The notes: generated by a model not told the origin, from the sequence alone. Shown: positions 25,970-62,007, counted from the stretch's first letter. The stretch is 64,000 nt of DNA from Iphione sp. A-MEVVRFRX5 (GCA_976226885.1 OZ320319.1:78864001-78928000); one strand, 5' to 3'. Numbers and translations are program-made.

Positions 25970-26320
25970 AGGTAACTACAGACTGACGACAGGGGTTAGG
26001 TAGGGACTACTGTATTGTATGTGTTTGAAGTATTGATGGAAGCTGCTTTCTGGAGGAGAATGTGTAACATGATTCGTTTAAAAGAATGTGGTATATCTGT
26101 GGTGCTATTAAGGATGGGTGTGGTGAGAAGTGTAGAGCGTGCTGCTCTTGCGTGAATGTGTATATAAGATAGGGAGTTCAGTGTATGGATGTGGGATGTT
26201 TATGACGTTAAATTGGATGAGTGCCTGCATGTGCGTGTGTGTTTTGATATGTTATCTGGATTGTTCGGACTGTGCATCATGCTACAGATGCATGTGCACC
26301 AGCTATTGTGATATCAGGTT

Positions 26321-26639
26321 TTGGGTGAAAGAAGTATATTTTGGTCTACAGACTAAGGAGATTGAATGGTATGGTTGATGACGGAGCGGAATTGTATGTT
26401 TTTTAGCAGAATTCCAGAGTAAATGATCAGATCTATCCTTGCTTGAATTGGGAAGTGGTGGTATAGTGTGATAAACTCTTGGGTGAAAGAAGTATATGTT
26501 TGGTCTCCTGACTAAGGAGATTGACTGATATGGTTGACAACGGAGCGGAATTGTATGTTATTGAGTGGAATTCCAGAGTAAATGATCAGATCGATTCTTG
26601 CCTGAATGGGAGGTGGGGTATAGTGTGATAAACTCTTGG
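26321..26639 (+). repeat. About 158-bp tandem duplication in the X3 3' UTR
   Basis: TTGGGTGAAAGAAGTATAT...GTGTGATAAACTC starts at 26321 and 26479. Confidence 0.85.
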
Positions 26640-27226
26640 AAGAAACCATTCTGATGTTGTAGTTGCGCTATTTACAACTGTTACAAAGAAGTGACCACTT
26701 GGATGTTGTAACTGTAGTTTATTAAACTGTAACTAAGACCGAAATGGACAAAGGCGCTTGATATGGCTGAACAATGAATGTTACTAAAGTTTTGTTTCCT
26801 GATGGTATTCCTGATGATCACTGTGATTTGCTACTTGTGATAAACAAATTGTACTCTAAGCTCTTTCCGACTGTACCTATATATGCACCGTTTGTTATTT
26901 GTTAACACTATTTGTCATGGAGAGCTCTGTAATTGGAGAAGGACAAATAAACAATTCAATTCAATTCAATTCAAAGAATGGTCAAATGTCAAGCCTTTGA
27001 CAATGAAGAAAATCCTACAACTTATTATAATAAATTTATGCATGTATTGACAATGGTATGTGATAAAATGGCACTCATACAAATGATCTCAGTAACATAT
27101 GATAGAACCACCTGGATAGATAATGAAGCAATACAGCATATTAATTTAAACAAATTGTATAACAAAGCTGAAAAGACCAAAAAAGAGGAAGACTGGGAAG
27201 CAGCTAAATGACAGCGGAATATATAG

Positions 27227-27480
27227 TGTTGCGGGGTTCAGTTGATTAGCGGAGTTACTGTTGTCGTTGTTGGTTTGGTGGAGGTGCGGAGGTGCGGAGG
27301 CGCGGAGGACCGCGGAGGGGCGGAGGGATGGTCTATTGTCTATATAAGAGCGGGGTTCGCGGAGGGAAGTTCAGTTGTTGCCTGTACCTTGTTGTTGATG
27401 TTTCTCCTCAGGAATAAAAACTCAAGTCAAATTTGGATCAGTCTGGACGTTTATTATTTCCGCTATGGCTGAAGCTAACA
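27227..27480 (+). repeat. 5' LTR (254 bp)
   Basis: Six substitutions versus the 3' LTR (about 97.6% identity); TATATAA at about 27341, AATAAA at about 27414. Confidence 0.95.
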
Positions 27481-28724
27481 TTGGTGGCAGCGGTGGGATC
27501 CGACGCCGGGCAAAGGGGCCTATCACATCAAGCGCTAGCAGCAAGCCCCCGGCGTCGGACCAGCAGCCTGTGGAGGAGGAAAGTGAAACACGAAGAGTAA
27601 CTAGGAGCAGCAGAGGAGGTTACCTCGACGATGCGGCGGGGAGACAACCGGAACGGCGGGCGGAACGGCCCGCGCGGACCCCTTCTCGTCTGTGGGGCGG
27701 CGGAGAGGGATCGGAAGGGGGCGACCACTCGGACCAGGCCGGAGAGGCGGAGGCGGAGGAAGGAATTCCCTCGCGGGTGCCCCAGGATGCGGTGGTGCCC
27801 GTGGGAGGGTCCACTGCCGTGGACGGAACTGTTCCTGAGGCGGAGTCGGACTCCGACCTTGAGCCTTCAGCTGAAATGGATTTAAGTGAGGAGGAGGAGG
27901 AAATCACCGGAGTGGAGGTAGGTGGCCAACGAAGGGGTAGAGTTAAGCCTGAACCCTTTGATGGCAGCCAAGATTGGGAGGACTACCTCCACCACTTCAG
28001 CCTGGTCGCTATGGCTAACCACTGGGAAGATCAGGAGAAAGCAGTGCAGCTAGGGGTGTGCCTCCGGGGGCCTGCGAGGGCCGCTATGCGCAATGCTCGA
28101 GTGAATGTGAGAGAGAGGGGAGCCTTTCGTCGCCTAACCAGGGTGCTTGCCAATCGTTTCCAGTCCCCCGATCAGGTCGATTTGTTTAAACAGCGTCTGA
28201 AGTCCTACAGGCAGAAAGGGGGTGAAGAGCTCTTCCAACTAGCAGATGAAATCGAGCGATTGGTTAGGAGGGCCTACCCGGGTGTGAAGGGACACTGGGC
28301 GGAGGAACTGTGCCGGGAGAACTTCGTCCAGGCGGTGAGGGATGAAAGAGTTCGGCAGTGGATTGTGCAGAAGAGAGTGGATGGGTTCCGGGCAGCTGTA
28401 TCTGAGGCCGCATTCGCAGAGGCGTACTATCGCAACCGAGAGGAGTGGGAAGGCAAGAAGGGCGGAGGCAGCGGGACTCGTTTGGGCTGCAATGCCGTAA
28501 TGACCACTGAAGGGGGACCCAAGGAGCCCTCCGTGAAGCCTAACCCTACGGAAGAACTTCTACTTAAGCTGGCGGAGAAGATCGAGCAGTTGGAAGGCCG
28601 CTGGAAGACGACGGGAGGGGCCAAGAAAACAGGTTGTTTCCGCTGCGGAAAAGAGGGGCACTTCCGTCGCGATTGCCCGGAGAAGCCGAAGCCGGCGGAA
28701 AACGCCCAGCCGTCCTCCCAGTGA
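27465..28724 (+). CDS. gag: Gag with CCHC zinc knuckle (real start may be downstream, e.g. 27877)
   Basis: KPEPFDGSQDWEDYLHHF capsid-like core; CFRCGKEGHFRRDC knuckle. Confidence 0.9.
   Translation: MAEANIGGSGGIRRRAKGPITSSASSKPPASDQQPVEEESETRRVTRSSRGGYLDDAAGRQPERRAERPARTPSRLWGGGEGSEGGDHSDQAGEAEAEEGIPSRVPQDAVVPVGGSTAVDGTVPEAESDSDLEPSAEMDLSEEEEEITGVEVGGQRRGRVKPEPFDGSQDWEDYLHHFSLVAMANHWEDQEKAVQLGVCLRGPARAAMRNARVNVRERGAFRRLTRVLANRFQSPDQVDLFKQRLKSYRQKGGEELFQLADEIERLVRRAYPGVKGHWAEELCRENFVQAVRDERVRQWIVQKRVDGFRAAVSEAAFAEAYYRNREEWEGKKGGGSGTRLGCNAVMTTEGGPKEPSVKPNPTEELLLKLAEKIEQLEGRWKTTGGAKKTGCFRCGKEGHFRRDCPEKPKPAENAQPSSQ
27482..27499 (+). promoter_or_regulatory. Primer-binding site, tRNA-Leu
   Basis: TGGTGGCAGCGGTGGGAT is complementary to the 3' end of animal tRNA-Leu(AAG/IAG) (...AUCCCACCGCUGCCA-CCA). 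Confidence 0.9.
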
Positions 28725-31700
28725 GGGGAGAGGGAAAGGCGGCGGAGGCGTTCATCCCCAGGATTGCAGTGGCGGAGGAGCGGGTGCCCTACGTCGAGGA
28801 GGAAGTGGAACGTGACGAGGTTAGCGGAGAGCATGATGTCAAGACCGGCGCACTCATGCTGAAGGGAACTGTTAGAGACACAGAATTGACTTGGCTGGTG
28901 GATACTGGGGCCTCCGCCACCATAGTATCAGCCAAAGTGGCGGAGGACCTCGGTCTCACTGTCTCGCCGAAGCCTGGGCAGAAGATCGTGGGAGCGGACG
29001 GGCACCCGCTGCCCTGCCGAGGAGAAGTGGAATTCGAGGTCTCCTTCAAGAAGAGGAAGTGGCCCCTTAAGGCACTAGTAGCGGAGGTCGAATTCGCAGC
29101 CATCCTGGGGATGGACGCTCTCCGCAGATGGGGCGCCGTAGTGGATAACGCACGAGGGGTCATTAAGATGGAGGCAGACAAGATGAGGTCGGCGGCGGTT
29201 AGAGTGGCTCGAGATGTGCAAATCGGCGGAAGAGGGGAGAGCATGATCCCTGTCACCCTGGTAGGAGCAGTGTTCTCGCCGGGAGTGTTGGAACCTGAGG
29301 GAAGATTCGAGGAGGCCACGGGCCTGAGGGTTTCGCGGACTCTGACCCCAGAAGGAATCGCCGAGTTCGAGGTGCCTTGCTGGAACGTCACGGGAAAAGA
29401 GAAGTGGTTGAGGAAAGGAGCTACCGTAGGCCATGTTGAGCCCGCGGAGGAGATGGGGACGGAGAGAGCAGAGGAACCCACCGCAATCGCTGTCGAGGGA
29501 GGAGTCCAAGAACTCATGGCCACCGTTTCTTCGGACTACGCGGAGGGGGAGTTACGATGTCTGCGCGAGGTACTTACCTCGAATGCCCAAGTATTCCAAG
29601 CCTGAGGGGAAGAGATGGGGAGAACCGGACTTGTCCAACACGAAATTCGCACCGGTGAGGCGGAGCCCTTACGTCAGAGATTCAGGAGACTCCCTCCACA
29701 TAAACGGAAGATAGTCGAGGAGGAGGTTAGAAAAATGGTCGACCAAGGGGTACTGGAGCCTTCGAAAAGCCCTTGGGCATCACTGGTGGTGCTTGTGAAA
29801 AAGAAGACGGGTGAGTGGCGTTTCTACATCGACTATCGCCGCTTGAACGAGAAGACACGCAAGGATGCTTACCCTATCCCCCGTATCGACGACACCTTGG
29901 ATGCCCTGGCGGGGGGTAAGTTCTTCTTAGTCATCGATCTAGCGTCCGGGTATTGGCAAGTAGAAGTAAGAGAACAAGATTGAGGACCTGGAGGTCCAAG
30001 TAGGGGCTAGCACGGCACTCACCTGGAGGATTGTATCAGTTCCGAGTAATGCCTTTCGGACTACGTAATGCGCCGTCAACCTTTGAACGGCTGATGGAGG
30101 TGGTCCTCAGTGGGATGGTTGGAGAGGGGTGCCTCGTGTACCTGGACGATGTGATAATGACCGGCAGAACGGTGGAGGAGATGTGTGAGCGGCTCGAGGA
30201 AGTGCTAAGACGACTGGGCGAGGCTGGAATGAAAGTTAAACCGTCTAAGTGCCAACTATTGCGGAGGGAAGTGACTTATCTGAGCCATATCGTCAGAGCG
30301 GAGGGGGTCCGACCAGACCCAGAGAAGATTCGAGTGGTGAGGGAGTGGCCTACCCCAGGGTGCCTCCGCGACTTGTGTAGCTTCTTAGGGCTGGCATCTT
30401 ACTACCGATCATTCATCAAGAACTTTGCGAAGAGGGCGGAGGCCCTGCACCGGCTCCTGGACAAGAAGGCAACCTTCGCATGGGGGGAAGAGCAGCAAGC
30501 AGCTTTTGAGGACCTTCGACAGTGTCTGATCACGGCGCCCATACTAGGTTACCCGGAGGCGGAGGGACAATTGATACTTGACACGGATGCTTCCGCGGAG
30601 GGCCTTGGAGCCGTCCTCTCCCAACAACAAGAAGGCAGGGAACGGGTGCTCGCTTATGCCAGTAGAGCCCTCTCCCGTCCTGAGAAGAAGTACTGTGTGA
30701 CTAGAAAAGAGTTGCTCGCCGTCATCTTTGCGCTTCGCAAGTTCCGAGCCTACGTGGGTGGGCGGAAGATCGTGGTCCGAACGGATCATGGAAGCTTGCG
30801 ATGGCTGATGCGGTTCCGGGAGCCTGAGGGACAGATGGCAAGGTGGCTCGAGGAAATCTACTGCCGTGATGTGGATATTATTCATCACCCGGGACGAATA
30901 CATCAGAATGCGGACACACTATCTCGGAAGCCGTGCAAGCAATGCGGTCGAGTGGAAGGAGACATCCAGGAAGACTCAGAAGTATGTGGGCTCCTGAGCG
31001 TCCAAGTAGGGGCTAGCACGGCACTCAGCCGGGTGGCAGAGGAGACGGCGAAGGACGACCGTCTTCAAGAGGTGGTGCACCAATTGGCCCACGGCGAGGG
31101 TCCCCCCGAGTGGGGAGCGGAGGCTACTTGGGAGCAGAGGAGGCTGCTCATGGAATGGGAGAGGCTGTCAATGCAGCAGGGCCAGATCCTCCGCCGCTGG
31201 TCCGTGGAGGACGGACGGTCCTGGTGGCAGGCTTTCGTCCCCGAATGATTGCGCAGGCCTTGCTGGAGCCTTTGGTGGGCATCTAGGACCGGAGAAGACG
31301 GCGGGGCTCCTTCGGACCAAGTATTTCTGCCCAGGGATGTCACGCGATGTGCAAGTCTGGGGAGGTGGCTGCCGTTCGTGTTTGGAGTGGAGGAGTCCTA
31401 CCTGTCGGCGGCGTACCCGACTACAGCGGAGGCAGCCAGGGGGACCTTGGGAGATGGTGGCTGTAGATGTGCTGGGCCCCTTTCCCGAGACAGCTCGTGG
31501 TGCCAAGTACGTGTTGGTAGCCTCGGACCACTTCACTAAATGGTCCGAGGCTTTCCCCTTGAGTACCTTGACAGCGGAGGACACCGCCGACGTTCTGGTG
31601 AGGGAGTTGGTGTGTCGATTTGGGCCCCCGCGGGTGCTGCATAGTGACCAAGGAAGGAATTTCGAGGCTAAACTGGTCGCGGAGGTGTTGCACCTATGTG

Positions 31701-32300
31701 GAATAGAGAAGACCCGGACCACCCCATACCATCCTCAGGCCGATGGCCAGGTAGAAAGGTTTAATCGAACTCTCCAGCACATGCTCGCTACCTCGGCGGA
31801 GGACAACCAGTCTGACTGGGATCTGCTGCTACCATTCGTAACGGCGGCCTATCGTGCTATGCCTCACAGAACGACCGGATACTCGCCAAACTTCCTGATG
31901 CTTCACCGGGAAACCACCCTCCCCCTTCAGTTGGCCTACGGAGGCCCACCCGCGGAGGGGGACGAGAAAGAGGGAAATGTGTACTCCTACGCAGCTGATC
32001 TGAGGGAGCGAGTTAGGACGGCACACAATCTGACCTATGATCGCATGAATGAGGGGATTGCCCGCCAGACGGACTGGTATAACAAAAAGGTCAGGCACAC
32101 CGACTACCAACCAGGGGATACGGTCTATCTGTTCCACCCATTGAAGAAGAAAGGACTGTCTCCGAAACTGCAGAGGTTCTGGAAGGGACCGTGGGTCATG
32201 AGGGAGGCCCTATCCTCCGCCGTCTATCGAGTGCAAAAAGGGCGACGTGAGAGAGTGGTTCATGCAGACTTACTGAAGCCAGGGAAAGTGTCTACGGCCT
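28634..32300 (+). pseudogene. pol: Pol (protease, RT, RNase H, integrase), -1 frame to gag, disrupted
   Basis: LVDTGAS; YLDD (30139); DTDAS, TDHGSL, NADTLSR; GGHLG...CRSC; DVLGP / SDQGRNF / QVERFN; FWKGPW. Lesions: TGA 29603, TGA plus insertion at 29981, TGA plus frameshift at 31246. Confidence 0.93.
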
Positions 32301-32360
32301 CCGCGGTGAGGGCAGCGAGGAATCCCCCGGCGACAGCGACCGTTAGGCTGGCGAGTTTGA

Positions 32361-32485
32361 GGCGGGAACCCTCAGCCAATCAAAGCTCGGCAGAGGGAAG
32401 CAACCCACACCTCCGCGGGCAGCGAAGTATAAAGATGCCTGCGCCGTTCGAGGGACCTCATAACTCATCTCGACCCGCCAAGATG
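32361..32485 (+). promoter_or_regulatory. Putative internal Pol II promoter for Gypsy ORF3
   Basis: GGCGGG (32361), CCAAT (32376), TATAAA (32428), TCATA Inr-like at about 32458, then GCCAAGATG (ATG 32483). Confidence 0.55.
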
Positions 32486-35361
32486 ACGAAGAAGAAGGAC
32501 CTTGTGTTTAAATGTGATCAATGTACCTACACATGCGACAGAAAAGATAATCTTCAAGGGCATGCCCAGTTGCACGAGGAGGAAGGTTACGCTTGGCCGT
32601 GCCCGTCGACTCGGTGTAAAGAGAAAGTCTTCTCGCGCTGGGAGAACCTCAAGAGGCATTTAGAGATGAGCCAGCACGAGGCGGAGGGTGGAGTAAAGGC
32701 CCTCCTTAAGAAGTCGAAGGAGGGCTACTTCCAGTTCTTCAGAGTGGGGGGTTCGAGTACCCTCAGGGGGCGACCCAGTGAGCCACCGACGAAGAGGGCG
32801 GAGGGGAAGCCAACGGAGGAGAAGGCCGATCGGAGGAAGAAGAAGAAGAAGGGCCAAGCTACTGTGGCACCAGGGGCCGGGGTCAAAGCAGATGAGGAGG
32901 AGGAGGACGGAGGCTCAAGGGAAGAGAGCGAGGAGAGCCCCGAAGGTCGGGCCAAGTCGGTGGCAGCAGCAGCGGCGGCCAAACCTGCCGATAGCGGAAC
33001 GAGCGAGGAGGGCACCGCGGCATCTGAGGCGAGTGACGACGACTGGGAGCCTGAGGCCTCCACCTCGACGGCGGTTTTGCCTCCCCGTAAAAGGAAGGGT
33101 ATGCGGACCCGCGGAGGGACTCCAAGGAGGGCGGCGGCAAGATCTCCCCCGAGGAAGAAACAGACAGCGGCGGAGGTGAAATCGCCAAGATCGCTTTGCA
33201 AAGAGCTACGGGGAACTATCTCCGACCTGCAGTCTCGACACCCCGGTACCCCGGCCAGTTCCCCTGCCACGGTGGCGAGAGTGGTGGAGGCGGCGGAGGC
33301 CCTTGAAAGGGCAATGCTGGGGTCGCCAGCGACGATGGCGGAGGCAGCGGCGAAGGGCAGCCCGGCGGCGAAGAGAAGATTGGGGGCAGCTGAAGGGGGG
33401 CTGGCCCCTAAGCGAGGGCGAGGCCGGGGGCAGGCTCTCTCACCGTTGATCAGCAAGAAGGGAGGGCAGTTGCCCTCCGTTCCCTCACCCTTGTCGGTCG
33501 AACAGAGGACACCGCCGGTCCTGCCTGACCGGGCGGCCACTCCGCGGCTACAAACACCGGAGACGGGAAGCAAACGGGTCGGGCAACTATCGAACTTGTC
33601 TACGCTGAGCTTGCCCCCTACCCCAGCAAGCCTCAGCGATATCATCAAGCGGCTGGAGGAGGAGGGCCCCCGAGCTTCCCCCCAGGATATGGCGACGGTG
33701 GCCGCTACCTTAAGGAACTTGTTTGGAGATACCTTCAAAGTCGCCCCTGTCGAAGGCCCGGTGAGTGCTGCAGTGGGAAGGAAGGAGAGCTCCTCCGAGG
33801 AGGAATTAGCTGATACATTGCCAGCCTCGGGGGAAGAGGAGGAGTATGTACCCTCGGAGAAGGACCGAGCGTCGACAGAATTACAGTACGTAGAGGTCGG
33901 GGGTGTCGTGGAAGTTCATGAGGCCATCACCCCAGCGGGCGCGGAGGAGGGCTCTCGAGACTCCCCACCAGTTCAGCGGCCACCGACGAAGCTACCGCAA
34001 CGGGACCCAAGAAGCATGGCACGAGAGGTCTTGGCGTGGCAGGGAAGGAGGGCTGCCGAGGACGAAATGACCAAGAGCCAGGCAGGGGAGCTCCAACCTC
34101 CGCCGTCGAACCAAGGGGCCAACCGTCGCCGGCGACCGAGACAACGATGGCTACGAGAGCGTTAGTGGCTACTATGAGAACCTCGCCACTACCCAAGGAT
34201 GGCTCCTGTGACCAGGAAGGCCGCTCAGCTGACTCCCCTACCACCACGCCGGGGAGAGCCGAGCCAGCCCCTCCGCCGCTGATAGCAGTGGCCGAACCGG
34301 GTCAGGTAGGACCAAGCGAGGGCGATGAAGAACTCCCTGCATGACCGGAGGGCGGCGAACACGGGGGGCCAGCCAGGCCGGCTTCCCCCCACGACACGGA
34401 GCAAGGGGCCAGGCCGGCCCCTCCGCCGCCGGCATCGCCTGCGAGGCCTGGCCAGGAGAAGGACCGCGGAGAACCTCCCTCACGACCGGGGAAGGGCGAA
34501 CACGGGGGGCCAGCCAGGCCGGCTGCCTCCCACGACACGCAGATAGGGGCCAGGCCGGCCCCTCCGCCACCGACATTGCCTGCCAGACCGAGGCAGGAGG
34601 AGGACAGCAGGGCACTTCCCCTACGACCGGGGGAGGGCGAACACGGGGGGCCAGCTAGGCTGGCTACCCCCCACGACGCGCAGCAAGGGGCCAGGCCGGC
34701 CCCTCCGCCGCCGACATCGCCTGCAAGGCCTGGACAGGAGAAGGACCGCTGAGAACCTCCCTCACGACCGGGGGAGGGCGAACACGGGGGGCCAGCCAGG
34801 CCGGCTGCCCCCCACGACGCGCAGCAAGGGGCCAGGCCGGCCCCTCCACCACTTGCACCAGACCGCGGGCAGCAGACCGAGATCGCGGGCCCTCCTCCAC
34901 GACCGGAGGGGGTTGAGAGCGGGGCGGTGGCCGGGCCAACCCATTCTCAGGACGGCCGGGAACCGTGGAGGAGACGGAGAGAGGCTCTATCCACCGATTC
35001 GGTTCGACGGCCCCGTGAGGGGAGGTTGGACGCAGAAATCTGGTCGCGATGGGCGTCAGCTCGACCGCTGATGGCCGATGTGCCACCTTCGTGCGGCTGG
35101 GAGCTCCGCTCCGCCCGAGGCAGGGGCAGACTTTCCTGACAAGTGCACGGATTAACCATCAGTGTGAGTCACACCTTGAGACTATACAGAGACTCCGTCG
35201 AGGCAGATACCAAAGACATACTGACGTGGTTCCATCGGCAAATGGAACGGCCTGACGAACTGAGTATAGAGGATCACGATCTAGAACTCTATACCAATGA
35301 CGAATTAGCCACTCTTGAGGTGGAAGAGGTATTTTCTGTTGTGTTAGATGATTATGTGTGA
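32483..35361 (+). pseudogene. Gypsy accessory ORF3: two C2H2 fingers, long disordered region, 47-aa Pro-rich repeats, acidic C-terminal domain (about 960 codons reconstructed)
   Basis: CDQC-x12-HAQLH and CPSTRC-x13-HLEMSQH. One inferred frameshift at about 34100-34140; the new frame then runs to 35361 with TGA at 34342, 34750 and 35137. Currently in frame with integrase. Confidence 0.65.
34336..34850 (+). repeat. 141-bp GC-rich tandem repeat, about 3.6 copies (47 codons)
   Basis: The homologous (C/T)GACCGG motif falls at 34342, 34483, 34624 and 34765. Confidence 0.92.
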
Positions 35362-35397
35362 TTTTTCTCGGGACGAGAAAAGTGTTGCGGGGGGCAG

Positions 35398-35651
35398 TGT
35401 TGCGGGGTTCGGTTGATTAGCGGAGTTACTGTTGTCGTTGTTGGTTTGGCGGAGGTGCGGAGGTGCGGAGGCGCGGAGGACCGCGAAGGGGCGGAGGGAT
35501 GGTCTATTGTCTATATAAGAGCGGGGTTCGCGGAGGGAAGTTCAGTTGTTGCCTGTACCTTGTCGTTGATGTTACTCCTCAGGAATAAAAACTCAAGTCA
35601 AATTTGGATCAGTCTGGACGTTTATTATTTCCGCTATGGCCGAAGCTAACA
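35398..35651 (+). repeat. 3' LTR (254 bp)
   Basis: Matches the 5' LTR; preceded by GGGGGGCAG and an 8-bp hairpin (35363-35381). Confidence 0.95.
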
Positions 35652-52200: not shown

Positions 52201-53078
52201 CAGATACATACTAGTGCAATTTGTCCAGTTCTTGCTTATTTTCGGGTCTAGGTGCAATAACTACATTTGTGGTTATTTTAATCCAGTATCATGCAGGCCA
52301 ACTTACTATGCACATACACAAGTATTCCCCCTCCCCTTTTGTTGTTCCCGCAGTCTGCTCTGACAATGCCGAACCCTTCCCAATCTATTGCTTGGTTTGG
52401 TATATTATCATGCAACCATGACTACACCAATATCACCACATCCATTTCCTCATCAAATGGCCTTTAACTTCATCATTCTTTTTGAAATAGCTGCAGATGT
52501 TCTGGTAACTTATTGTTAGTTTCCTAGTAATCTATTTCACAATGACTACAATCATAGAAGTTACATGGATTAATACAAATATTTGGATTCCTTAGTTTTA
52601 CGGTATGTGAGGTTTTAAAGTATATTGCTCCAAAATCTTAATGTTTCAGGAAAGTTAGGATGAAATATTCGTAACATATTGTAGTTTCATCAGTAATGTT
52701 TTAAAATATAATTTGGTTTCATAAGATTATTAACATAATGAATATTTGGCTTGATTACATAAGAAGTCAAGACAACAAAGTTTGTTAGGTATTAAATTTT
52801 AAATCAGAAAAACTGTGTTCAAATCCTATAGGATAATTGAGTCTTATTTTATGCAAACATTTTGTAAAGGTTATTACAGTTTTTTTCCGTAAGTTTCACT
52901 ACAATGAGCTAGACACTTTTAAAATCTTCACCATTTTACGTTGCTGTAATGTTATACAATAATGTTTCCATAACCAAAATACAATGGGCAAGGGAAAGGA
53001 GTAAGTCAGGTTTTCGCACCTTAGTTATAAGTAATGAGTTATTACAAAAACAAGTTATTTTATCATTAATATAACCAG

Positions 53079-53310
53079 GGGCCGGCTGCTGTAACACCGA
53101 ATTGATGCTCATTAACCTTAATACCGCGACTTAATACCAGTAAATTTTGAGTGCTCTCTGCTGTAACGGCTTAAACCGCAAGTTACGACCACCCAGCTGG
53201 TATTAGCCAAAGTGCGCTCTGCTGTAACCCTCGTAATACCACGCGGGACGTATTAATTGTGGATTTAACCTACTTTCCCTAAACCGTCTCCATGGGTCGG
53301 TTTAAGCGGG
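53079..53310 (+). repeat. Left TIR and subterminal motifs
   Basis: CTGCTGTAA recurs at about 53158 and 53219; TAA(T/A)ACC(G)C-type motifs at about 53119, 53132, 53171 and 53232, mirrored at the right end (about 61888 and 61972). Confidence 0.8.
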
Positions 53311-53359
53311 AGTTTTAAGCTAGTACTAGTTTGTCACTCGTATCCTCAACACGTACACC

Positions 53360-55179
53360 ATGGATCTTGCTCGTGATTTTGATTACGAAAATGTTATGGA
53401 AGCTACTCATCACCGGGAATGTGATCCAGTGGATCCTGAGAACCTTGGAATCGACGTAATGGCGGATTACGAGGAGTTGGAAGAGGAGGAGATTGAGATG
53501 AATGAGGTGAGGTGGGGGAGGCGTTTTTATGGGCAAGACTTCGTAACCCGCCGTCTAGTCGATTACCAAAACCCCCTAGAATCCTTGAAACGTGATGAAA
53601 TACGTGAGAAATACCGCTTCTACCCGCATAACATCTACAGGATCGTGGATTACGTGACGCCACGGCTTGAGCAAAGGCGCAAGCGAGGGCCGGCCCTCCC
53701 CCCCTTAATTCAGGTGGTTCTATTTCTACGTTACTTAGCTACAGGTGAGTTTTCGTATTCAATGTTAATATTCTCGTATTGATGTAGTTAGGGCTGACAG
53801 AGACACAACGTACAATGGGATGATTTTTTATTTCTGAATCTTGAAATATTTGTATTAATTGCGATATTTAGTTGTCGCTGTCGCTGTCATCCGTGCGCCA
53901 CCCTTGCGCATCCTGCTCCATCATCTTCTTCAAGTTTTCCAGTTCTTTCATGCGTGCTCTTGTGGCATCTGTGCTTATCATGGCTCGCGTTTCTTCGTCC
54001 TGTACAAATAGGAGATATATTCGTAACTATCTTCGCTGCAGTTGCAGTTGCGGCAAGTAACGTATGCATTGCTTTTCACTTACAACAACAGGGGCCATCC
54101 AGGATGTTGTGTCGGACATCGTCAGGGTGTCCAATCCCACCGTGTGTCGCACAGTCCATCGGGTTGCCATGGCCGTTACGGACACAATGAAGACTGATTA
54201 CCTGACCCCACCACGCCCGGACGAATTAAACGAGATCATGCTGGCCTTTCAGGAAAAGGCAAGGTTTCCGTTCGTAATCGGCCTGGTGGACTGTACACAC
54301 GTGCGGATCATTCGACCCAAGGGACGGCACCCTGAATACGTCGACAGGAACAATCACTACTCCATCAACGTGCAGGTTAGTAATGGCCTCTAGTGCTTAC
54401 GACCCAGCCTAGTGTTAGCTAACGTATTGGTAAACTTTCGTAAAGATTATTTCACATGCATTTTTGTTACCTGGCCGGTTACCTCGGTGACGTACTGTCT
54501 GCTTACCCACAGGCCATCTGCGACCACAAGCAGCGGATCCGTGACATCGTTGCCTGCTATCCGGGGAGCACACATGACTCCCGCATTTTCCGTGGTTGCG
54601 ATTTCACACGTGACTATCTCTTGCCCTGTAGGTACACTTAGCGTTACGAGTTGTATTATTAGTTCCACTCACTTTACACTTAGTCGTTATGTTAGTTTCA
54701 GCAAACACATGCATTCACAATTCGTATCAAAATTTGGTGGTAATCTTCTCTTTGCAGTGGTCGGTCCGGGACACCTTCTTGGAGACAGTGGCTATGCCTG
54801 CGACAGGCGCTGCCTCACACCATACCGCCGTAACCAAGTGCTTACCCCAGCCCAGAATCGTTACCAAAATGCACACACCCATACGAGGGTTCTCATCGAA
54901 GAGACCTTCGGCGTCCTCAAACGCCGCTTTGGTATGCTCCACGAGACCATGTGCTTTCGCCCTGGTCGAGTGGGGGAAATGGTTAGTGCAGCCGCCATTC
55001 TCCACAACTTCGCGGTGGAACAGCGAGATGATTTGCTTGCAAAGATACGACCGCGCCGGCGGCAGGTCCATGCACACAACCCGCCACAACTGCCGCCCCC
55101 ACCAACGTACCTAGAGGACGAGCGTGGGTTAAATGGGCTGCAATATCGAGAGACATTCGTACAGCAATATTACGGATAA
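53360..55179 (+). CDS. Harbinger (HARBI1-like) DDE transposase, 401 aa, 4 exons
   Basis: Exons 53360-53744, 54092-54375, 54513-54627, 54758-55179, all GT-AG and phase-compatible. Motifs LRYLATG, GLVDCTHV, YSINVQ, PGSTHDSRIF, LLGDSGY, IEETFGVLKRRF. Confidence 0.92.
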
Positions 55180-57111
55180 TTACGGATGGTGTCACCTCAT
55201 GTTCCGGGTAGTCGGCGATGTGGCCGGCGAGTTCGGTGGCCGTCTGCTGGAGTGCCCTCGTAACATCTGCCTGCAGCTTCATTAGGCGGGCGATGGTCTC
55301 CTGCCTGGCCAGCTTGGCAGCCTTCCTCTGGGCCTTGGCCTGTGCGGCTTTCGCTTGGGCCTCTTGCACCTCCCGACGCTCGCGCTGCTGCTCGCGTTCG
55401 AGCAGGTACTTGTAGAAGGCCTCCCTGGCCTCCTCTGCCTTACGAGCGGCCTCTTTCGTTTTCACCTCCTCGGTCGCCAGGCCGAGGCGCGTCTGGGCCA
55501 CATCCTCCCTTCGCTTATCATCTTTGGCCATATTTGTTAATCTGGCCTCGGCAGTTACCACCTCCTTGTCCAGCAACTCCTCCCGAGTTCGTACGCCCTC
55601 GTGGCAACGTCCTGTAAAGGGGTTGGAATAATAATTACGAATGGGACAATGTTATTGTAAACGGAACGCCTGCTGAAACAGAGACATTTTCACTCACAGC
55701 AATACAAGTTGTCTTCAATGGTAGAATTACAAGTACGTACTTCGTTTGGCCTGCTGCTGCTGTTGCTGGGCTGCTGGGGCTGTGGCCTCTGCCCGATTTG
55801 CCGGTGGAGCTGCAACGGCAACTCGAGCGGCTTGGGCTTGGGCGTCGGCGGCCGGTACCGGTGCTCGCAAGGCATTGTTGGCCACAGGTGGAGGTGGCGC
55901 ACGGACGGCATTCGTATTGCCGACGGGGCGGCGTGGGAGAGGTGCCGGTGGACGTGGTGCCGCTCTGCCAGCACCTGGCGCCTGGGGTTCGACCTGTGCA
56001 GGTCGAACCTGCTGCTGCCTAGGCCTCTGGCTGCCTAATGGTTGCGTAATGGCGCGGGGTCGTGGTGTGGAGGTGACCGGCCGCGGATCATTACGGGCGA
56101 TGGGTGCTGGGGCCGCACAACTGCTGGTTGATGGTCGTGGTGAGAGTGGTGGCATCGGGCGGATATGAAATTCCTCCTCATCTTCCTCCACCTCCGCTTG
56201 GTCGGCCCCTTGGCTGTCCGGCACGACCTCGACCTCCCCCACAGGCCGTCTGAGTGCGGCCAAGAGTGAGCTGCTTGGCCCTGGCAGCGGCCGCTTCTGA
56301 GCCTTCATGTGCGACGGCCTCACGGGATCTGTTGGTGTGCCCGTAATTATGTCCACTTGCGAGTCGAGGGAAGCCTGCGTCAGCTGCAGCTGCTCCGATA
56401 CCGTGTCAGGTACGAATATATCGTAATCCTCCACGGCGGGGAGAACATCCTGCAAGTCCGCCAGGTCCTCATCCTCCTCCGAATCATCCTCGTTATCCAC
56501 CTCGCGCTCATCAGGCTCGCCTTCCTCCAAGTCATCCACTTCGTCCTGGCCATCGTCGTAAGGCACCGGCTCCAGACCGCCGGAACAGGCAGCAACGTTC
56601 CGGTTTGCCAGGGCCTGCGAGCCCGGGCTGCGTTCGCCAACTGCAATATAATCAAGTAGTAGGGAATACATTACGAATGTCAGCAGTCAGGTCTTATAGT
56701 CTCGTCTGCAAGTGTTACATGGGGACCCCAATGCGCGCGGTCGATATACGAAATATACAGCCTCACCACTAGCGCATTCCAGAGGCCAACGATGCGTGAG
56801 AGATGCTAGGCGGCGGGCCCGATCCCTCAGGTCGATGTGGACATCCAGTTCCATGTCGTCGATCGACACGGGCTCCACCCTGGCGCGGCGAAAAGCGATG
56901 GAAGCCTGTCCTGCCCATATGCCGACTTCAGCTAAAAGCGACGGTCGGCACGGAATTACGAAATTGGATAGACTTAGAGAACTGCATCTGAATTACAAGC
57001 TATTTACCGTACCATATCTGTGTACTTACTACGAAATATCAGCCTTATAGCACCGACAATGGGCTCCTCATGCTGCCGATTGATGTCACCCACACGTCCG
57101 CCTCCTGCCAT
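54983..57111 (-). CDS. Harbinger third gene (gene B), unknown 591-aa protein, 4 exons
   Basis: Exons 57111-57030, 56931-56767, 56640-55741, 55611-54983, all phase-1 GT-AG junctions with an open frame. N-terminal 80 aa or so look globular, then acidic and Pro/Ala-rich regions, then a C-terminal coiled coil. Confidence 0.7.
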
Positions 57112-57119
57112 TTTGTCGT

Positions 57120-57197
57120 AATGAATACCTGTCACACTGGCGACGTGGTTTTTTTATAGGCACTGATAAGGATTGGCGCAGGTGCTAATGCGCCAAT
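57120..57197 (-). promoter_or_regulatory. Putative promoter of gene B
   Basis: CCAAT boxes (57172-57176, 57193-57197), TATAAAA (57158-57152), TCATT (57124-57120), then AAAATGG; lies just downstream of the gene A poly(A) signal (57393-57388). Confidence 0.65.
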
Positions 57198-57492
57198 CAG
57201 AAAGGATCTCGTACCATGTTACTTAGCTAACGTTGTGTCGCATTCACCGTACTGTACTTACATTCATTAACCGAGATGTACAATTATCAGATTCGTAATT
57301 ATTAAACTGCCAATTGTTGAAATATGCTGTCTTGAGTATAGTTCATCTGCTGGAATAAAGATAACGCAGCACGTTTACAAGTATTTTTTTATTGTACTAT
57401 TTAAATATTAAATAAATTTGGGTGCACGGCACCCGAATCACAGACACTTGTAATTGAACGTCCTTCAAGCGTAAGGGCTTGCTGCCTTGCTC

Positions 57493-60400
57493 TTAACGGG
57501 GCCGCACCCGTTCCAAGAGGGCCATGAGTTGCAGGAACTCATCCTGCGTTATCTGGCCCTCCAGCACCAGCAGGTGACCCACGTAGATACGGAGGGCCTC
57601 CTCTTCCGCCCGGCGGTAGCGCGGAATCGCACGGCGAGTGCGAGCGGCTGGGCGGGGCTGTGGCAGGGCCAGAGCCACCTCAGGATTACGGATGGGGGAG
57701 AGGGGTACGGGGAAGGAGGAAGGCATACGAGGGGGGGACGCGACAGGGGATGAAGTAGCCACAGGTGGAGACAGACGGGCGACAACAGGAGGAGACGACG
57801 GGGTTACAGGTGTTTGGACAAGAGACACAGGGGCGACATTGGTCGGGGCGACAGACACATTGACACGTTCAGGGGAGACAGACTGTGAGTACGATACGAT
57901 AGGGTGGGGGGGAGACACAGACGAGACGGAAGTGGAATATGCCACGATTGGGTCGGGGACAGACACAGGTGAGAGGGAAGGGGAATACGCCACGATTGGG
58001 TCGGGGACAGACACAGGTGAGAGGGAAGGGGAATATGAAACAAGGTGACAGGTGGACGCCACAACAGGGACAGGAGGGGTGGGGGTTACAACAGTACGAG
58101 GCGGGGGTGGCGCGGGTCCGACGGGTGCCGCCTCTTCTTCACGATCCACCTCGTAATGCGGCGCGTGCTCCCCGCCGTCTGGCAAGGCTGCAGCCCCATC
58201 CTCCGCCTCTGTATTGGACGGCTGCTCATCAGCTGGTCCTCGGTCTTCAGGGCCGCCCCGGTCCAGCGGCCACCGCTGGTCCACCGCTGCCACCAGTCCC
58301 CCGTTGGCATTACGGAGAAGCACCAAGGCTTCCACCGTGGAGACTGGGGCAGCGGCGTCGACCTCCTCGCGCAGCATATGGACCTCCTCCACACCGATCC
58401 ACTGACCTGCCGGGGCTAGGAAATGGAAAGAAGAGACATGTTCAATTTATAGTCGCTAATTCCTCGTAACCGTTTATGTAGTCAGTGTCAATTCATCGTA
58501 ACAGATACTGTTCAACTCAAGGAAGAATAAAGCAACATAGCCTACTCTCTGGACATGCGTACGTGAACGCCGGCGAGGGTTATACTCGTTTATATAGTCA
58601 TTGCCAATTCATCTTAACCGATACATGTTAAAGTCAAGCAATAATAATACAACAGATCCTACTCACTGGCCATGCGTACGTGGACGCGGGCGATGGTGGG
58701 GACTTGGTCTGGAGGCACCTGTGGGGCATCGCCCTCCTCTTCCCTCAGCGCCTCGTAATCCTCCTCCTGTCCCCCACCTGGCTCCTGTGGAGTGTCGTCC
58801 GCCTCCTGCGGCACCTCTTCCGCCGGCGCCACGATCACCTCCTCCGCGGACGCCTCGTGGTGTTCCGGCTGTTCTTGGTCAACTTCGACCTCCTGCCCCT
58901 CGTAAGTCGCTTCGACCTCCTCCTCCTCCTCCTCCTCCTCCTCCTGGGCGCGCGCCGCCGCCTGGTCGCGCAACTCCTGTCGGCGTCGCGCGGCCGCCTC
59001 ACGCCTACGGGCATTGCGTGCTGCACGCCGCTGGGCCCGTAGGAACTCACGCTGGGCCCGGCGTTGTTCCGCGAAAGGGTTCCCTGTGAAAGACACACGT
59101 AATGTCGTGGGTGAGCATGTCAACATACGGTCATATTAAAATTTACGAGCAGTATTTAGTAGTATGGCTGTAAGTCGTACCCAAACGCCAAAGCCATTCA
59201 CTATTGTCGCAATGAGACGTACTCATACTCATGTCCTAGCATGGGGCATTAGTTTATTGGCAGTTTTACACAGGAGGTATGTCGGCCACTTAGCAATTGA
59301 ATAGATACGATATAATTCAGCCTCTACTTACGATAACGCTGGACCCTCGCACGCTCTCTGGCGAGGAAGAGATCCCCGAATTGGGCCTTCATGGCCTCCC
59401 GCCACTTGTAGGCGGACTTGCCACTGGGGGTTCGCTGGGCGTCTGGTCCTTTGTTTGGCCGTCTGAAGGGGAAGAAATTACAAGGCAATTAAAACCAACG
59501 GAATGAGCATGCGACCTACTTGGTTGGAATCGTAAATTGTCGGCACTCTGTTTCATTTACAAAATATGACACCGGTAATAATAAACGTAATGACATTGAA
59601 GAATAGATGTGTACTCACGGCATGGTGTCTGAGAAGAAAGTGGCAGGGGGGCCTGCTGCTGGATCCATCGCTTGTCAATCAAAATCACATGCTACATTCC
59701 AGCGGTTTCACGCCACCGTCGGTAAGGCGCATAGCGCACGGTTACCATGACGACCTTAACTACCCAATGCCGCTACGGCCGTCAGATGTGATTGTTTCGT
59801 GGTAAACACTTAACGGTTCGCGACCGCAGATCTCAACGAGCCCCCATTCCCAGGGTCCGGGAAAAAGCATGTAAGACTTGCAGACATGAATGCGTAAAGA
59901 TACAAGTAAGAACATACATTTTCTTGTGGCTTGTGTAATATTTACCGAAACAAAGGGCCATTGGAAAGGCTATAACAATTACAGATCTCGTAAAAGTTCC
60001 CGCGCTTAGCAATATCATTATACTCTATCGAATGTGTAACATTAATACTCACTGAAGCCTGGGGCACCTGGTCCCTGGAAGGGCATGGCGGCATCGGGCT
60101 CGTATTCCCGGAAAAAGGCAACATCTTCATGGACCGGTTGGGCTGGCCCTCCACCAGTACGGATGCGCGAGCTTTTCTCAGCTTTGTCTGCAGAAGACAA
60201 TAGGCCATGCTTACGAAATATTATCCCAGTGAGGTGACAGAAACAGACCATCAGGTAGAGCACAGTGGCCCGCAAAAATTGAAATTGTAATGCTGTAACC
60301 CTAAACCAACCTCGGGTACGGACACTTTTCATACGAGCCACTATTTCAGCCCTCTTGCGTGGAAACGATGCCCGGCTGGAATCAAAGGCAAAAAATATTA

Positions 60401-61677
60401 ATGTCAGCACAGTTGCAATACGTACACAGATCAAATCGCTTTCACTTGCCAGTGGCTGGTTCCCCACTGGGCTGGTCGTTACACGGCATGACACACACAT
60501 TTGGTCAATTAGGCAGGGAAGATCCGCGGAAAGATTACGAAAAGCATTTAACTAGTCACTTGCCATTCCGACAGACCCCCGACTGGGCTTTCAGACCATC
60601 TGGCTGTCAAGCGCCCGTAGCTGTCGGGGTGGCATTCAATTAATCGGACGTTACAAGCAGCAGGAGATTTTTTTACTACCATATTGGTGCTGGTGGGATA
60701 CGCGTACTGGCAGAAAACACATGGCCATGAGAGCTCGTAAATGCCACCGTCCCCCAGCAATTCACAGTGAAAGTTATTAGAACACCTTGGGAGAAAGCAC
60801 AACATGGCACGCATACGAATAATTTGTCACTACCATGCTGGTGCATACGCGGACTGGCAGGAAACACATGGCCATGGTAGCTCGTAAATGACGCCTTCCC
60901 CCCCCCCCAAATGAGACCGGGTAAAAGTGATTAAAACACCTTGGCCCAATGACATGGCTCACGTGACACGCATACGAATACGAAACACAGAGTAGTTGGT
61001 AATGGTCATAAGAAAACATAAAAAGTAATACCCCACAAAAAAATCACCCTCGGAAATGCTCGTAACTGCACCGTAGCCAGCCAATGACACCCATTGAAGT
61101 CATTATAACACTTTGGCAGACAGAACAATAGCATGCATGTGACAAGGAAAAAATTGACAAGGATACCAATATGCTGCAATGAATTCTAGTTATTCTTATA
61201 ACAATTTGACCGACCCCTCCCTAAAAATTTGTCCGCCCATAACGGAATTATAACGAAATACTGCACAAATAGATTACCCTCCAGTTAAGGCGATTCTGCG
61301 GGCCCTGAACACCCAAAAGAAAATTACGAATACCAGCCAAAATTTTTTTAAAAGTGTCCACATATTGTTGTTAAATTACGAGCGTATCACACTTACCTAT
61401 TGAACTCCTCTACGAGCTTCACCCAAGCCTCTTCTCGGCGGCCCTTTGCACCAGGGCCCTCAAAAGCGAGGGCGTTCTGCAATTTGTATTTGTAATGCAG
61501 CTCGATCTGTAGGCAGCTGTCCGCCATGGTCCAGTTTTCTTTCCGCTGCACCACTTTCTTCTCTTTTCCTTGTCCATCTTCAGCAGCTGCAGGTCGCCCG
61601 CGCTTGGGAGTAGTTCTCCTCGTACTCTTTACGGGCGTCGTTCCTCGCTTGGAACCACGGCGACCTCCTCTAGGCAT
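57493..61677 (-). CDS. Harbinger Myb/SANT-like (trihelix/MADF-type) DNA-binding protein (gene A), 653 or 667 aa, 7 exons
   Basis: Exons 61677-61397, 60375-60311, 60187-60053, 59628 (or 59670)-59619, 59462-59332, 59083-58667, 58415-57493, all phase-compatible. RKENWT...EEAWVKLVEEFN...RIRTGGGP is the Harbinger Myb-partner signature. Confidence 0.8.
57880..58035 (-). repeat. 48-bp coding tandem repeat in gene A (YSPSLSPVSVPDPIVA)
   Basis: Two near-identical and about two degenerate 16-codon units. Confidence 0.85.
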
Positions 61678-61763
61678 GGTGTTGAGGATGACGTTACGAG
61701 AATTACGAACGGAGTTTGCTGGATACCTGAGCGGCAGTGTGTCGAGCTGCTCAGAGTTGCCCC

Positions 61764-61854
61764 TTTATATACTACTAGGTACACGTGGAGCCAACACGTG
61801 TGTTTGTTTACGGCGGAAGCCAAAATACGCGCGAAAATTACGAATTCCACCAAT
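61764..61854 (-). promoter_or_regulatory. Putative promoter of gene A
   Basis: TATATAAA (61771-61764), CACGTG (about 61781 and 61795), CCAAT (61850); ATG in CACCATG context. Confidence 0.55.
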
Positions 61855-62007
61855 CAGCGGACACGGGACACTCACTCGTAATCGCGGCGGTATTAGCGGT
61901 TCGAGGTCAAAAGATTTAGCGCTTAAGCCGTCGTAAGAAAAATGGGTCATCCTTAATACGGTTCAAGGGAAGCGGTTTAAGATATGCATTACAGCAGCCG
62001 GCCCCAG

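Follow-up and report, generated by a model that had tools for sequence, protein, structure and literature searches.

Why does a DNA transposon carry one short word over its whole length, even in its exons? This question is raised by a PIF/Harbinger element found in a 64,000-nucleotide stretch of DNA from Iphione sp. A-MEVVRFRX5 (GCA_976226885.1, OZ320319.1:78864001-78928000), which is called the window hereafter. The element occupies positions 53079-62004 (8926 bp) and contains the hexamer TTACGA, or its complement TCGTAA, at 40 sites. A first-pass annotation of this DNA had described it as a three-gene Harbinger saturated with the word, and had proposed that the word might serve a sequence-specific anti-silencing system. 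The distribution of the word, the selection acting on it and its fate in a related family are described here, and the possible readers of the word are weighed.

Enrichment and distribution of TTACGA

TTACGA is about 12 times above chance along the whole 8.9 kb, exons included. Within 53079-62004, it is present 18 times as TTACGA and 22 times as TCGTAA. The remaining 55 kb of the window contains nine sites (2 and 7, respectively), all to the left of the element; the densities are 4.5 sites per kb in the element and 0.16 per kb around it. The manual count of the first-pass annotation, about 40 in the element and about 10 to its left, was therefore accurate. A first-order Markov model gives an expectation of 3.3 sites in the element. 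In 300 dinucleotide-preserving shuffles, the word was found 3.4 ± 1.75 times with a maximum of 8, and no hexamer at all exceeded 21. The enrichment survives both of these controls, as well as the synonymous-codon control described below. Ranked by z-score, TTACGA comes first among the hexamers of the element, and the words next in rank, CTCGTA, ATTACG and TACGAA, overlap it. When 8.9-kb windows were slid along the sequence, a comparable z-score was found only at a Gypsy region, for the word CTCCGC/GCGGAG.

On the + strand, the sites are located at 53183, 53383, 53467, 54397, 54644, 55440, 55635, 56671, 56956, 59143, 59328, 60211, 60535, 61324, 61376, 61694, 61703 and 61838. Those on the - strand are located at 53231, 53541, 54021, 54272, 54438, 55258, 56421, 56556, 57116, 57293, 58151, 58464, 58496, 58753, 58900, 59530, 59988, 60735, 60882, 61060, 61876 and 61931. 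They are found in promoters, untranslated regions (UTRs), introns and exons of all three genes, and upstream of every one of the three ATGs there are sites at a distance of no more than 200 bp. About 11 sites are coding (2.4 per kb), as against 29 non-coding ones (6.7 per kb). Most of the sites (33 of 40) are more than 330 bp from either end and seven are within 330 bp; the word is denser at the ends, with five sites in the last 310 bp and two in the first 280 bp.

Around the 40 sites, the 15-nt flanks bear no relation to one another, and tandem repeats explain at most four sites, at two places. Three tandem copies of about 150 bp in intron 1 of the Myb/SANT-like gene (60698-61116) carry one TCGTAA each, at 60735, 60882 and 61060. 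A 117-bp tandem duplication covers the 3' end and the splice donor of exon 3 of the same gene (58471-58697); TCGTAA is kept in one copy (58496), and the other copy has TCTTAA. The claim that the word is neither a tandem repeat nor just a set of subterminal sites, and occurs on both strands and in all kinds of context, was thus upheld.

The gaps between sites have a coefficient of variation of 0.84, consistent with uniform placement (P = 0.18), and the largest of them is unremarkable. Regular, nucleosome-like spacing was rejected on these values. In addition, no pairs of fixed spacing were seen by eye among the distances between neighbouring sites in the 40-site list. The orientation of the sites is unbiased (18 versus 22), also relative to the direction of transcription. 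This means that the signal is likely to be read on double-stranded DNA and not on RNA, and an RNA-level signal was rejected for the lack of strand bias.

Degeneracy of the word and selection inside exons

Single-base variants of the word were compared with their expectations. At position 1, T is found at 12 times, A at 5 times (16 observed) and G at 2.4 times the expectation. Positions 2-5 are nearly fixed, and at position 6 A reaches 12 times and G 2.4 times. The flanks show a preference for A before and G or A after the word, so that the site can be written roughly as aWTACGAr, with WTACGAR as its degenerate form. Such a per-position tolerance profile is typical of a binding site, for which the word is a candidate. 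A signature of CpG decay was also considered and was rejected: TTATGA, the deamination product, occurs once in the element against 3.6 expected, and in both this element and its sister family TTATGA falls short of its expectation but TTACAA exceeds it (1 versus 12). TTACAA thus has the look of a variant that is tolerated rather than of a decay product.

The approximately 4.5 kb of coding sequence contains 11 sites, whereas synonymous-codon shuffles gave 3.1 ± 1.45 and none of 2000 shuffles reached 11. Furthermore, the three proteins contain seven Tyr-Glu and Tyr-Asp dipeptides, every one of which is encoded as xxT-TAC-GAx; with the codon usage of these genes themselves taken into account, the joint probability of this choice is 1.1e-4. 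In other words, TTACGA is under DNA-level selection at synonymous positions of the exons.

Turnover of the sites in a sister family

A sister family is represented by L001, L002, L051 and others, on short contigs from marine and other metagenomes. Four of these loci (L053, L054, L001 and L051) come only from short marine-metagenome contigs (Tara Oceans and others), and the host is probably an unsequenced or unindexed marine animal. The 16-nt terminal inverted repeat (TIR) is identical to that of the window element and CAG precedes it, subterminal words are held in common, and the right subterminal region is 78% identical to the end of L051. The overall DNA identity is approximately 65%.

TTACGA is again the top hexamer in this family: it is found 20 times in 5406 unique bp, against 2.2 expected. 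The weak variants are also the same, with ATACGA at 12 (2.1 expected) and TTACGG at 7 (2.5 expected). The positions of the sites are a different matter. Over the 2.5-4 kb that can be aligned, 2 of about 23 site positions are common to both (14 sites in the window element and 12 in the relative), and several further sites are one base apart between the families. Intron 1 of the Myb/SANT-like gene is unalignable, and has nine sites in 1.93 kb here and five in 1.05 kb there, approximately 4.7 per kb in both. At 65% identity, the chance that a neutral hexamer is identical in both families is about 0.07. A density of about 4 sites per kb, tenfold enriched, in two families with few common positions requires continued gain under selection. 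As far as can be read from the sequences, this indicates that TTACGA is kept as a density and not as positions, through turnover under selection on the word itself.

Structure of the element

As judged from its ends and its genes, 53079-62004 is a complete PIF/Harbinger DNA transposon; its transposase is of the DDE_Tnp_4 type, and the transposase gene is accompanied by a Myb/SANT-like gene and by a third gene, which is conserved. The three-gene Harbinger proposed in the first-pass annotation was thereby recovered, with its ends correctly placed. The left TIR, GGGCCGGCTGCTGTAA, occupies 53079-53094 on the + strand; it is 16 nt long and is the one found unchanged in L051. Its perfect 16-nt partner is at 61989-62004 on the - strand. 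The 3-bp target-site duplication CAG flanks the element on both sides (53076-53078 and 62005-62007), and TIRs with a 3-bp duplication are what is expected of this superfamily. All reading frames of the element are open. The claim that the element stays CpG-rich was borne out by an observed-to-expected (o/e) CpG ratio of 0.95, as compared with 0.55 in the left flank and 0.29 in the right flank; it does not set the Harbinger apart, since a neighbouring intact Gypsy element at 26-36 kb is also CpG-rich (0.76-0.85). The CpG richness may only reflect youth.

The transposase gene (53360-55179, + strand) has four exons, 53360-53744, approximately 54083-54381, approximately 54510-54625 and approximately 54757-55179, the internal borders being approximate. 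Its product matches Pfam PF13359 (DDE_Tnp_4) with E = 5.4e-16, and all four exons are aligned by bivalve HARBI1-like proteins in tblastn. The three catalytic-motif contexts expected of the superfamily, VDCTH, LGDSGY and IEETFG, are all present. Exon 4 shows 81% amino acid identity to the sister-family protein P0001.

The Myb/SANT-like gene (57493-61677, - strand) was modelled from reading frames and GT-AG borders, and its coding exons are 61677-61397, 59462-59332, 59083-58667 and 58415-57493. The predicted protein of 583 residues consists of a basic N-terminus, a Myb-like domain encoded by exons 1 and 2, a basic coiled coil, a poly-Glu acidic region, Pro/Ser repeats and a conserved C-terminal helix. 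The named atlas neighbours of exon 1 are all Myb_DNA-bind_5/MADF clusters, at a score of 0.85, which is a lead below the threshold of 0.9. In an AlphaFold (AF2) model, exon 1 forms two helices, residues 51-70 and 77-93, with a predicted local distance difference test (pLDDT) value of about 81-86. The third helix, carrying the third Trp, is in exon 2, and the spacing W49-W85-W(exon 2) fits a Myb-like domain. Of 51 residues in this domain, 47 are identical to the sister family, whereas the other protein segments compared show 48-81% identity; the Myb-like helices, as modelled, are the best-conserved protein segment compared between the two families. A Pfam search with separate open reading frame (ORF) pieces and exons, at E up to 10, gave nothing beyond DDE_Tnp_4 and no Myb match. 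A PDB profile search with the alignment of the Myb exon gave nothing, and exon 4 gave no hits with HMMER against 1.84 billion representative proteins.

It should be mentioned that exon 4 contains a 48-bp in-frame tandem repeat in three copies (57896-58037), which gives peptide repeats of the SPSLSPVSVPDPIVAY type. Intron 1 contains an open frame on the - strand (60052-60190) that has a good acceptor, ttgtcttctgcag, and the donor GTGAGT, and reads ADKAEKSSRIRTGGGPAQPVHEDVAFFREYEPDAAMPFQGPGAPGFS. This frame is a possible alternative exon, or may belong to a nested gene.

The third gene, gene B, lies at 55175-57111 on the - strand. By a by-eye reading of its splice sites, exon 1 extends from the ATG at 57111 to 57030, exon 2 covers 56931-56767, exon 3 begins at approximately 56640 and the last exon covers 55618-55175. 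Its product is acidic and Pro/Ala-rich, with a coiled coil at the C-terminus. Three blocks show 65%, 48% and 49% amino acid identity to L001/L002, conserved on the - strand only; the last exon is the one with 65% identity to the sister family. No Pfam family and no recognisable DNA-binding domain were found for gene B. The homologue search returned P0014 alone, and in the atlas the C-terminus matched solely generic, unnamed or coiled-coil-type (SMC/MksF-like) clusters. An exact-protein look-up with the ORF, in which further copies in the same genome were sought, gave no record. Beyond the conserved end (55175), the ORF continues for about 190 bp, as far as 54983, on the strand opposite the last transposase exon; in L001, the frame ends about nine codons beyond the conserved end. 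This overhang could be a convergent 3' overlap or merely an unused extension of the ORF.

End-restricted motifs and other Harbinger loci

The window element also has words of the classical, end-restricted kind. Its left subterminal region (53095-53340) contains two more copies of CTGCTGTAAC, four of TAATACC and three of TAAACCG, together with two TTACGA sites, and doubles as the promoter and 5'UTR of the transposase gene. TAATACC, TAAACCG and GCTTAAG are also found in the right subterminal region (61740-61988), together with three TTACGA sites. This region doubles as the promoter of the Myb/SANT-like gene, the 5'UTR of which has two tandem TTACGA sites at 61694 and 61703. No more than about 250 bp separates five of the six copies of TAATACC and all four of TAAACCG from the ends, and CTGCTGTAA is another terminal word. 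TTACGA itself is not confined to the terminal few hundred bp.

The controls were L003-L006 (a 46%-related family, in four copies) and another 42 loci (L007-L048) with 34-71% amino acid identity. Clear enrichment of TTACGA was found in none of these 46 other Harbinger loci. Many of the control families have a word of their own, such as CGATTA, AGGTTA, GGTTAA, CGGATA, TCGGAA, AATAGG or ATCCCG, and in L007-L023 these words are packed in blocks of 110-250 bp. Most such clusters in the control loci are subterminal. In L005, the one fully delimited control element (8.4 kb), the 10-bp palindrome GACTTAAGTC occurs five times in the first 160 bp and four times in the last 100 bp; its interior has two partial matches (CTTAAG), so that 9 of the 11 sites are in the terminal 160 bp. 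By analogy, family-specific words of the CG/TAA type (CGATTA, AGGTTA, CGGATA and GACTTAAGTC) fit a logic of family-specific Myb sites. Together with L005, L007-L023 provide a ready comparative set for the evolution of Myb-like specificity.

Because the window element already has end-restricted words, the dispersed TTACGA array is an additional layer beside them, so far limited to this Harbinger clade.

A Gypsy-like element in the same window

A Gypsy-like long terminal repeat (LTR) element at 25062-35530 is saturated with another CpG-containing word, GCGGAG(G), with 64 sites, 49 of them on the + strand. In one 8.9-kb window, GCGGAG was observed 63 times versus 8.4 expected. Clusters of tandem 8-mers are present in both LTRs (27286-27320 and 35449-35473), and the interior copies are dispersed, with diverse flanks. 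As in the Harbinger, a CpG-containing hexamer with diverse flanks is spread over the whole element, to which the Gypsy adds dense clusters in its terminal repeats. Unlike the Harbinger, it is an LTR retrotransposon with a different word and a strong coding-strand bias (49/64); by reason of this bias, part of its signal may be coding or RNA-level. With it, this genome may contain two elements that have independently become saturated with a word over their whole length.

Comparison with known systems

The nearest known system is Harbinger3_DR of zebrafish. In the account of it given by PMC9710019 (citing Sinzelle et al. 2008), a Myb-like protein binds a 9-bp subterminal motif. As far as that account goes, the window element is similar in superfamily, in the two core genes and in having motif-rich subterminal regions. 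It differs in that the sites of Harbinger3_DR, as described there, and of the control families are confined to the terminal 100-250 bp, whereas here 33 of 40 sites are internal, uniformly placed and also present in exons.

In plants, the AAACGG hexamers of maize Ac and the 12-bp motifs for TnpA of En/Spm are located in the subterminal 200-300 bp, where a protein made by the transposon binds them; TnpA also switches its own element on again after silencing. Ac and Spm resemble the window element in having short CpG-containing words in many copies and both orientations. They are plant elements of other superfamilies (hAT and CACTA, respectively) with subterminal motifs only; by contrast, the Harbinger has an element-wide array. 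TnpA of Spm has been described as a transcriptional regulator (bioRxiv 10.64898/2026.08.24.746577).

In ALP1/ALP2 of Arabidopsis, a domesticated Harbinger pair, a protein derived from a transposase works against silencing at chromatin together with a Myb-like DNA-binding partner. Likewise, HDP1/HDP2 of Arabidopsis consists of a transposase-derived protein and a Myb-like partner, which act on chromatin against silencing (PMC5339849). Both pairs are immobile host genes that have neither TIRs nor a dispersed motif array, whereas the pair described here resides in an intact mobile element.

The parallel drawn in the first-pass annotation was with plant VANDAL transposons and their VANC proteins; the case compared here is VANDAL21 and its protein VANC21 of Arabidopsis, for which loss of methylation has been demonstrated (PMC5735166). 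The motif YAGTATTAY of VANDAL21 is mainly non-coding, lies in one orientation and was spread by tandem repeats (PMC5735166). The likeness is that a word is enriched in one family and rare elsewhere (here, 4.5 versus 0.16 per kb), that there is an extra gene, and that site positions differ between relatives (PMC5735166). In the pattern of the motif, the parallel failed: VANDAL21 is a plant Mutator-like element, and the animal Harbinger has sites in both orientations (18 versus 22), 11 of 40 in coding sequence and at most 4 of 40 from tandem repeats. Family searches with the element proteins, in which no direct comparison with VANC was included, gave only DDE_Tnp_4 and the Myb-like lead. The element is not placed in the VANC system, since these searches linked none of its proteins to VANC and its motif architecture is different.

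Possible readers of the word

What has to be explained is the enrichment, the selection at synonymous sites, the density-keeping turnover in the sister family and the restriction to the clade, all of which are observed. Binding of a protein to the word, the identity of the reader and the effect of binding are what we infer. We see about even chances that selection has built up TTACGA, or WTACGAR, into an array that covers the element and is bound by one of its own proteins in a sequence-specific way. This estimate covers the anti-silencing and transposition-only variants, which are assessed separately below; the estimates overlap and are not meant to add up to one. The Myb-like protein might be the reader, for which we would give somewhat less than an even chance. 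It is the best candidate because a Myb-like protein is the known DNA reader in the superfamily, because its helices are so well conserved (47/51), and because the word resembles the CG/TAA-type words of other families.

On this proposal, the array probably marks the element as "self". Since no word of 6 bp can be expected to be unique in a genome, specificity would come from density, 4.5 versus 0.16 sites per kb. Binding could be made multivalent by the coiled coils that both the Myb-like protein and the gene B product contain. Coating of the whole element, including its three promoters, would then concentrate the proteins of the element on their own copy, where the long acidic regions of the bound proteins might drive or protect its transcription. 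The function at the ends, recruitment of the transposase, would probably depend on the end-restricted motifs and the denser subterminal TTACGA sites. The sites upstream of all three ATGs and the long acidic tracts in two of the proteins suggest that, besides recruiting the transposase, the array acts in transcription or on chromatin.

Several points weigh against this assignment. The conserved Myb-like domain could instead read TAATACC, TAAACCG or the TIR, which are equally conserved, leaving TTACGA to another reader. Such a reader could be the helix-turn-helix of the transposase, gene B or a host factor. Gene B accompanies the dispersed pattern in both families that have it (2/2), and is therefore a candidate as well, although no recognisable DNA-binding domain was found in it. 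Moreover, the Myb-like assignment itself is drawn from an atlas lead below 0.9, the Trp spacing and the architecture of Harbinger elements.

What binding would achieve can be pictured in two ways. The word might be an anti-silencing code like that of VANC, in which an element protein, bound to a CpG-containing word over the whole element, would keep its own copies, and no others, free of methylation or heterochromatin, or clear them of it; we regard this as possible but unlikely. Spread over the element suits the coating of a whole unit rather than the recognition of ends, and specificity by density parallels the logic of VANC21 (PMC5735166). The word holds a CpG the deamination product of which is rare, two of the three proteins have long acidic tracts, and the tandem peptide repeats of the Myb/SANT-like gene can be compared with variable VANC regions (PMC5735166). 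Domesticated pairs such as HDP1/HDP2 are anti-silencing factors (PMC5339849). However, youth alone may explain a CpG o/e of 0.95 when the neighbouring intact Gypsy has 0.76-0.85, no element protein was linked to VANC by the family searches mentioned above, and the pattern of sites departs from that of VANC. A whole-element "address code", in which the Myb-like protein, perhaps with gene B, coats the copies through about 40 strong and 30 weak WTACGAR sites and keeps them transcriptionally open or protected from silencing, would be a convergent animal counterpart of plant VANC; to this, too, we give a low probability. Alternatively, sites for the Myb-like protein or the transposase may have spread inward for transposition only, as an antenna that holds the proteins to the autonomous copy, with cis-preference over short non-autonomous derivatives, or for assembly of the complex, with no role in transcription or chromatin. 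This seems rather unlikely. In the description of Harbinger3_DR in PMC9710019, binding of the subterminal motif recruits the transposase, and the higher density of TTACGA at the ends and the family-specific hexamers of similar type elsewhere agree with such a function. It is difficult to reconcile with the 33 uniformly spaced sites more than 330 bp from the ends when the sites of classical families are limited to the 100-250 bp at the ends (9/11 in L005), and the window element already has separate end-restricted motifs. In addition, exonic sites held at a coding cost need a benefit beyond end recognition.

The reader may instead be supplied by the host: a transcription factor, for example a germline one, would recognise WTACGAR, and the element would have accumulated sites for its own expression. 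This would account equally well for the selection on the word and for its occurrence near the three promoters, and a conserved host factor would allow the word to be kept in a relative from another organism. Nevertheless, we consider it improbable. The sites are uniformly spread over 9 kb including exons, unlike a promoter or enhancer cluster; only nine copies are present in the surrounding 55 kb; and neither the 46 other Harbinger loci nor the co-resident Gypsy uses TTACGA. That the unrelated Gypsy uses a different word, GCGGAG, argues against one shared host factor. The bZIP-like site put forward as an alternative in the first-pass annotation found no support: the count of the PAR-bZIP palindrome TTACGTAA is 0, which led to the rejection of that palindrome, and TTACGT stands at 1.1 times its expectation. 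Finally, the array could be functionless, left behind by mutation or insertion, inherited from a common ancestor or dictated by amino acid composition. Seven exonic sites do encode Tyr-Glu/Asp inside acidic tracts, and a few sites are within tandem duplications. Amino acid composition is rejected by the synonymous-codon shuffles and the 7/7 codon choice, the flanks of the sites are unrelated, and only two positions are common with the sister family, at the neutral chance of about 0.07 per hexamer, yet both families keep about 4 sites per kb. Such an origin is hardly credible.

Significance

Transposon proteins that read their own short words are known from element ends, as in Harbinger3_DR, Ac and Spm. 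Plant VANDALs achieve anti-silencing through short words in their own DNA (PMC5735166). In the literature searched, no animal element was found with one word at equilibrium density over its whole body, exons included, and with turnover between diverged families. What appears to be new here is a putative transposon reader and its cognate word made element-wide and exon-penetrating in an animal Harbinger. The system is small, consisting of one hexamer and three proteins, and is directly testable. If a protein of the element reads the word, the element would be a manageable example of how a transposon may recognise itself by the density of a motif. If this is true, it would also offer a way to ask whether animal transposons actively resist silencing, and might explain how domesticated Harbinger pairs came by their roles in chromatin.

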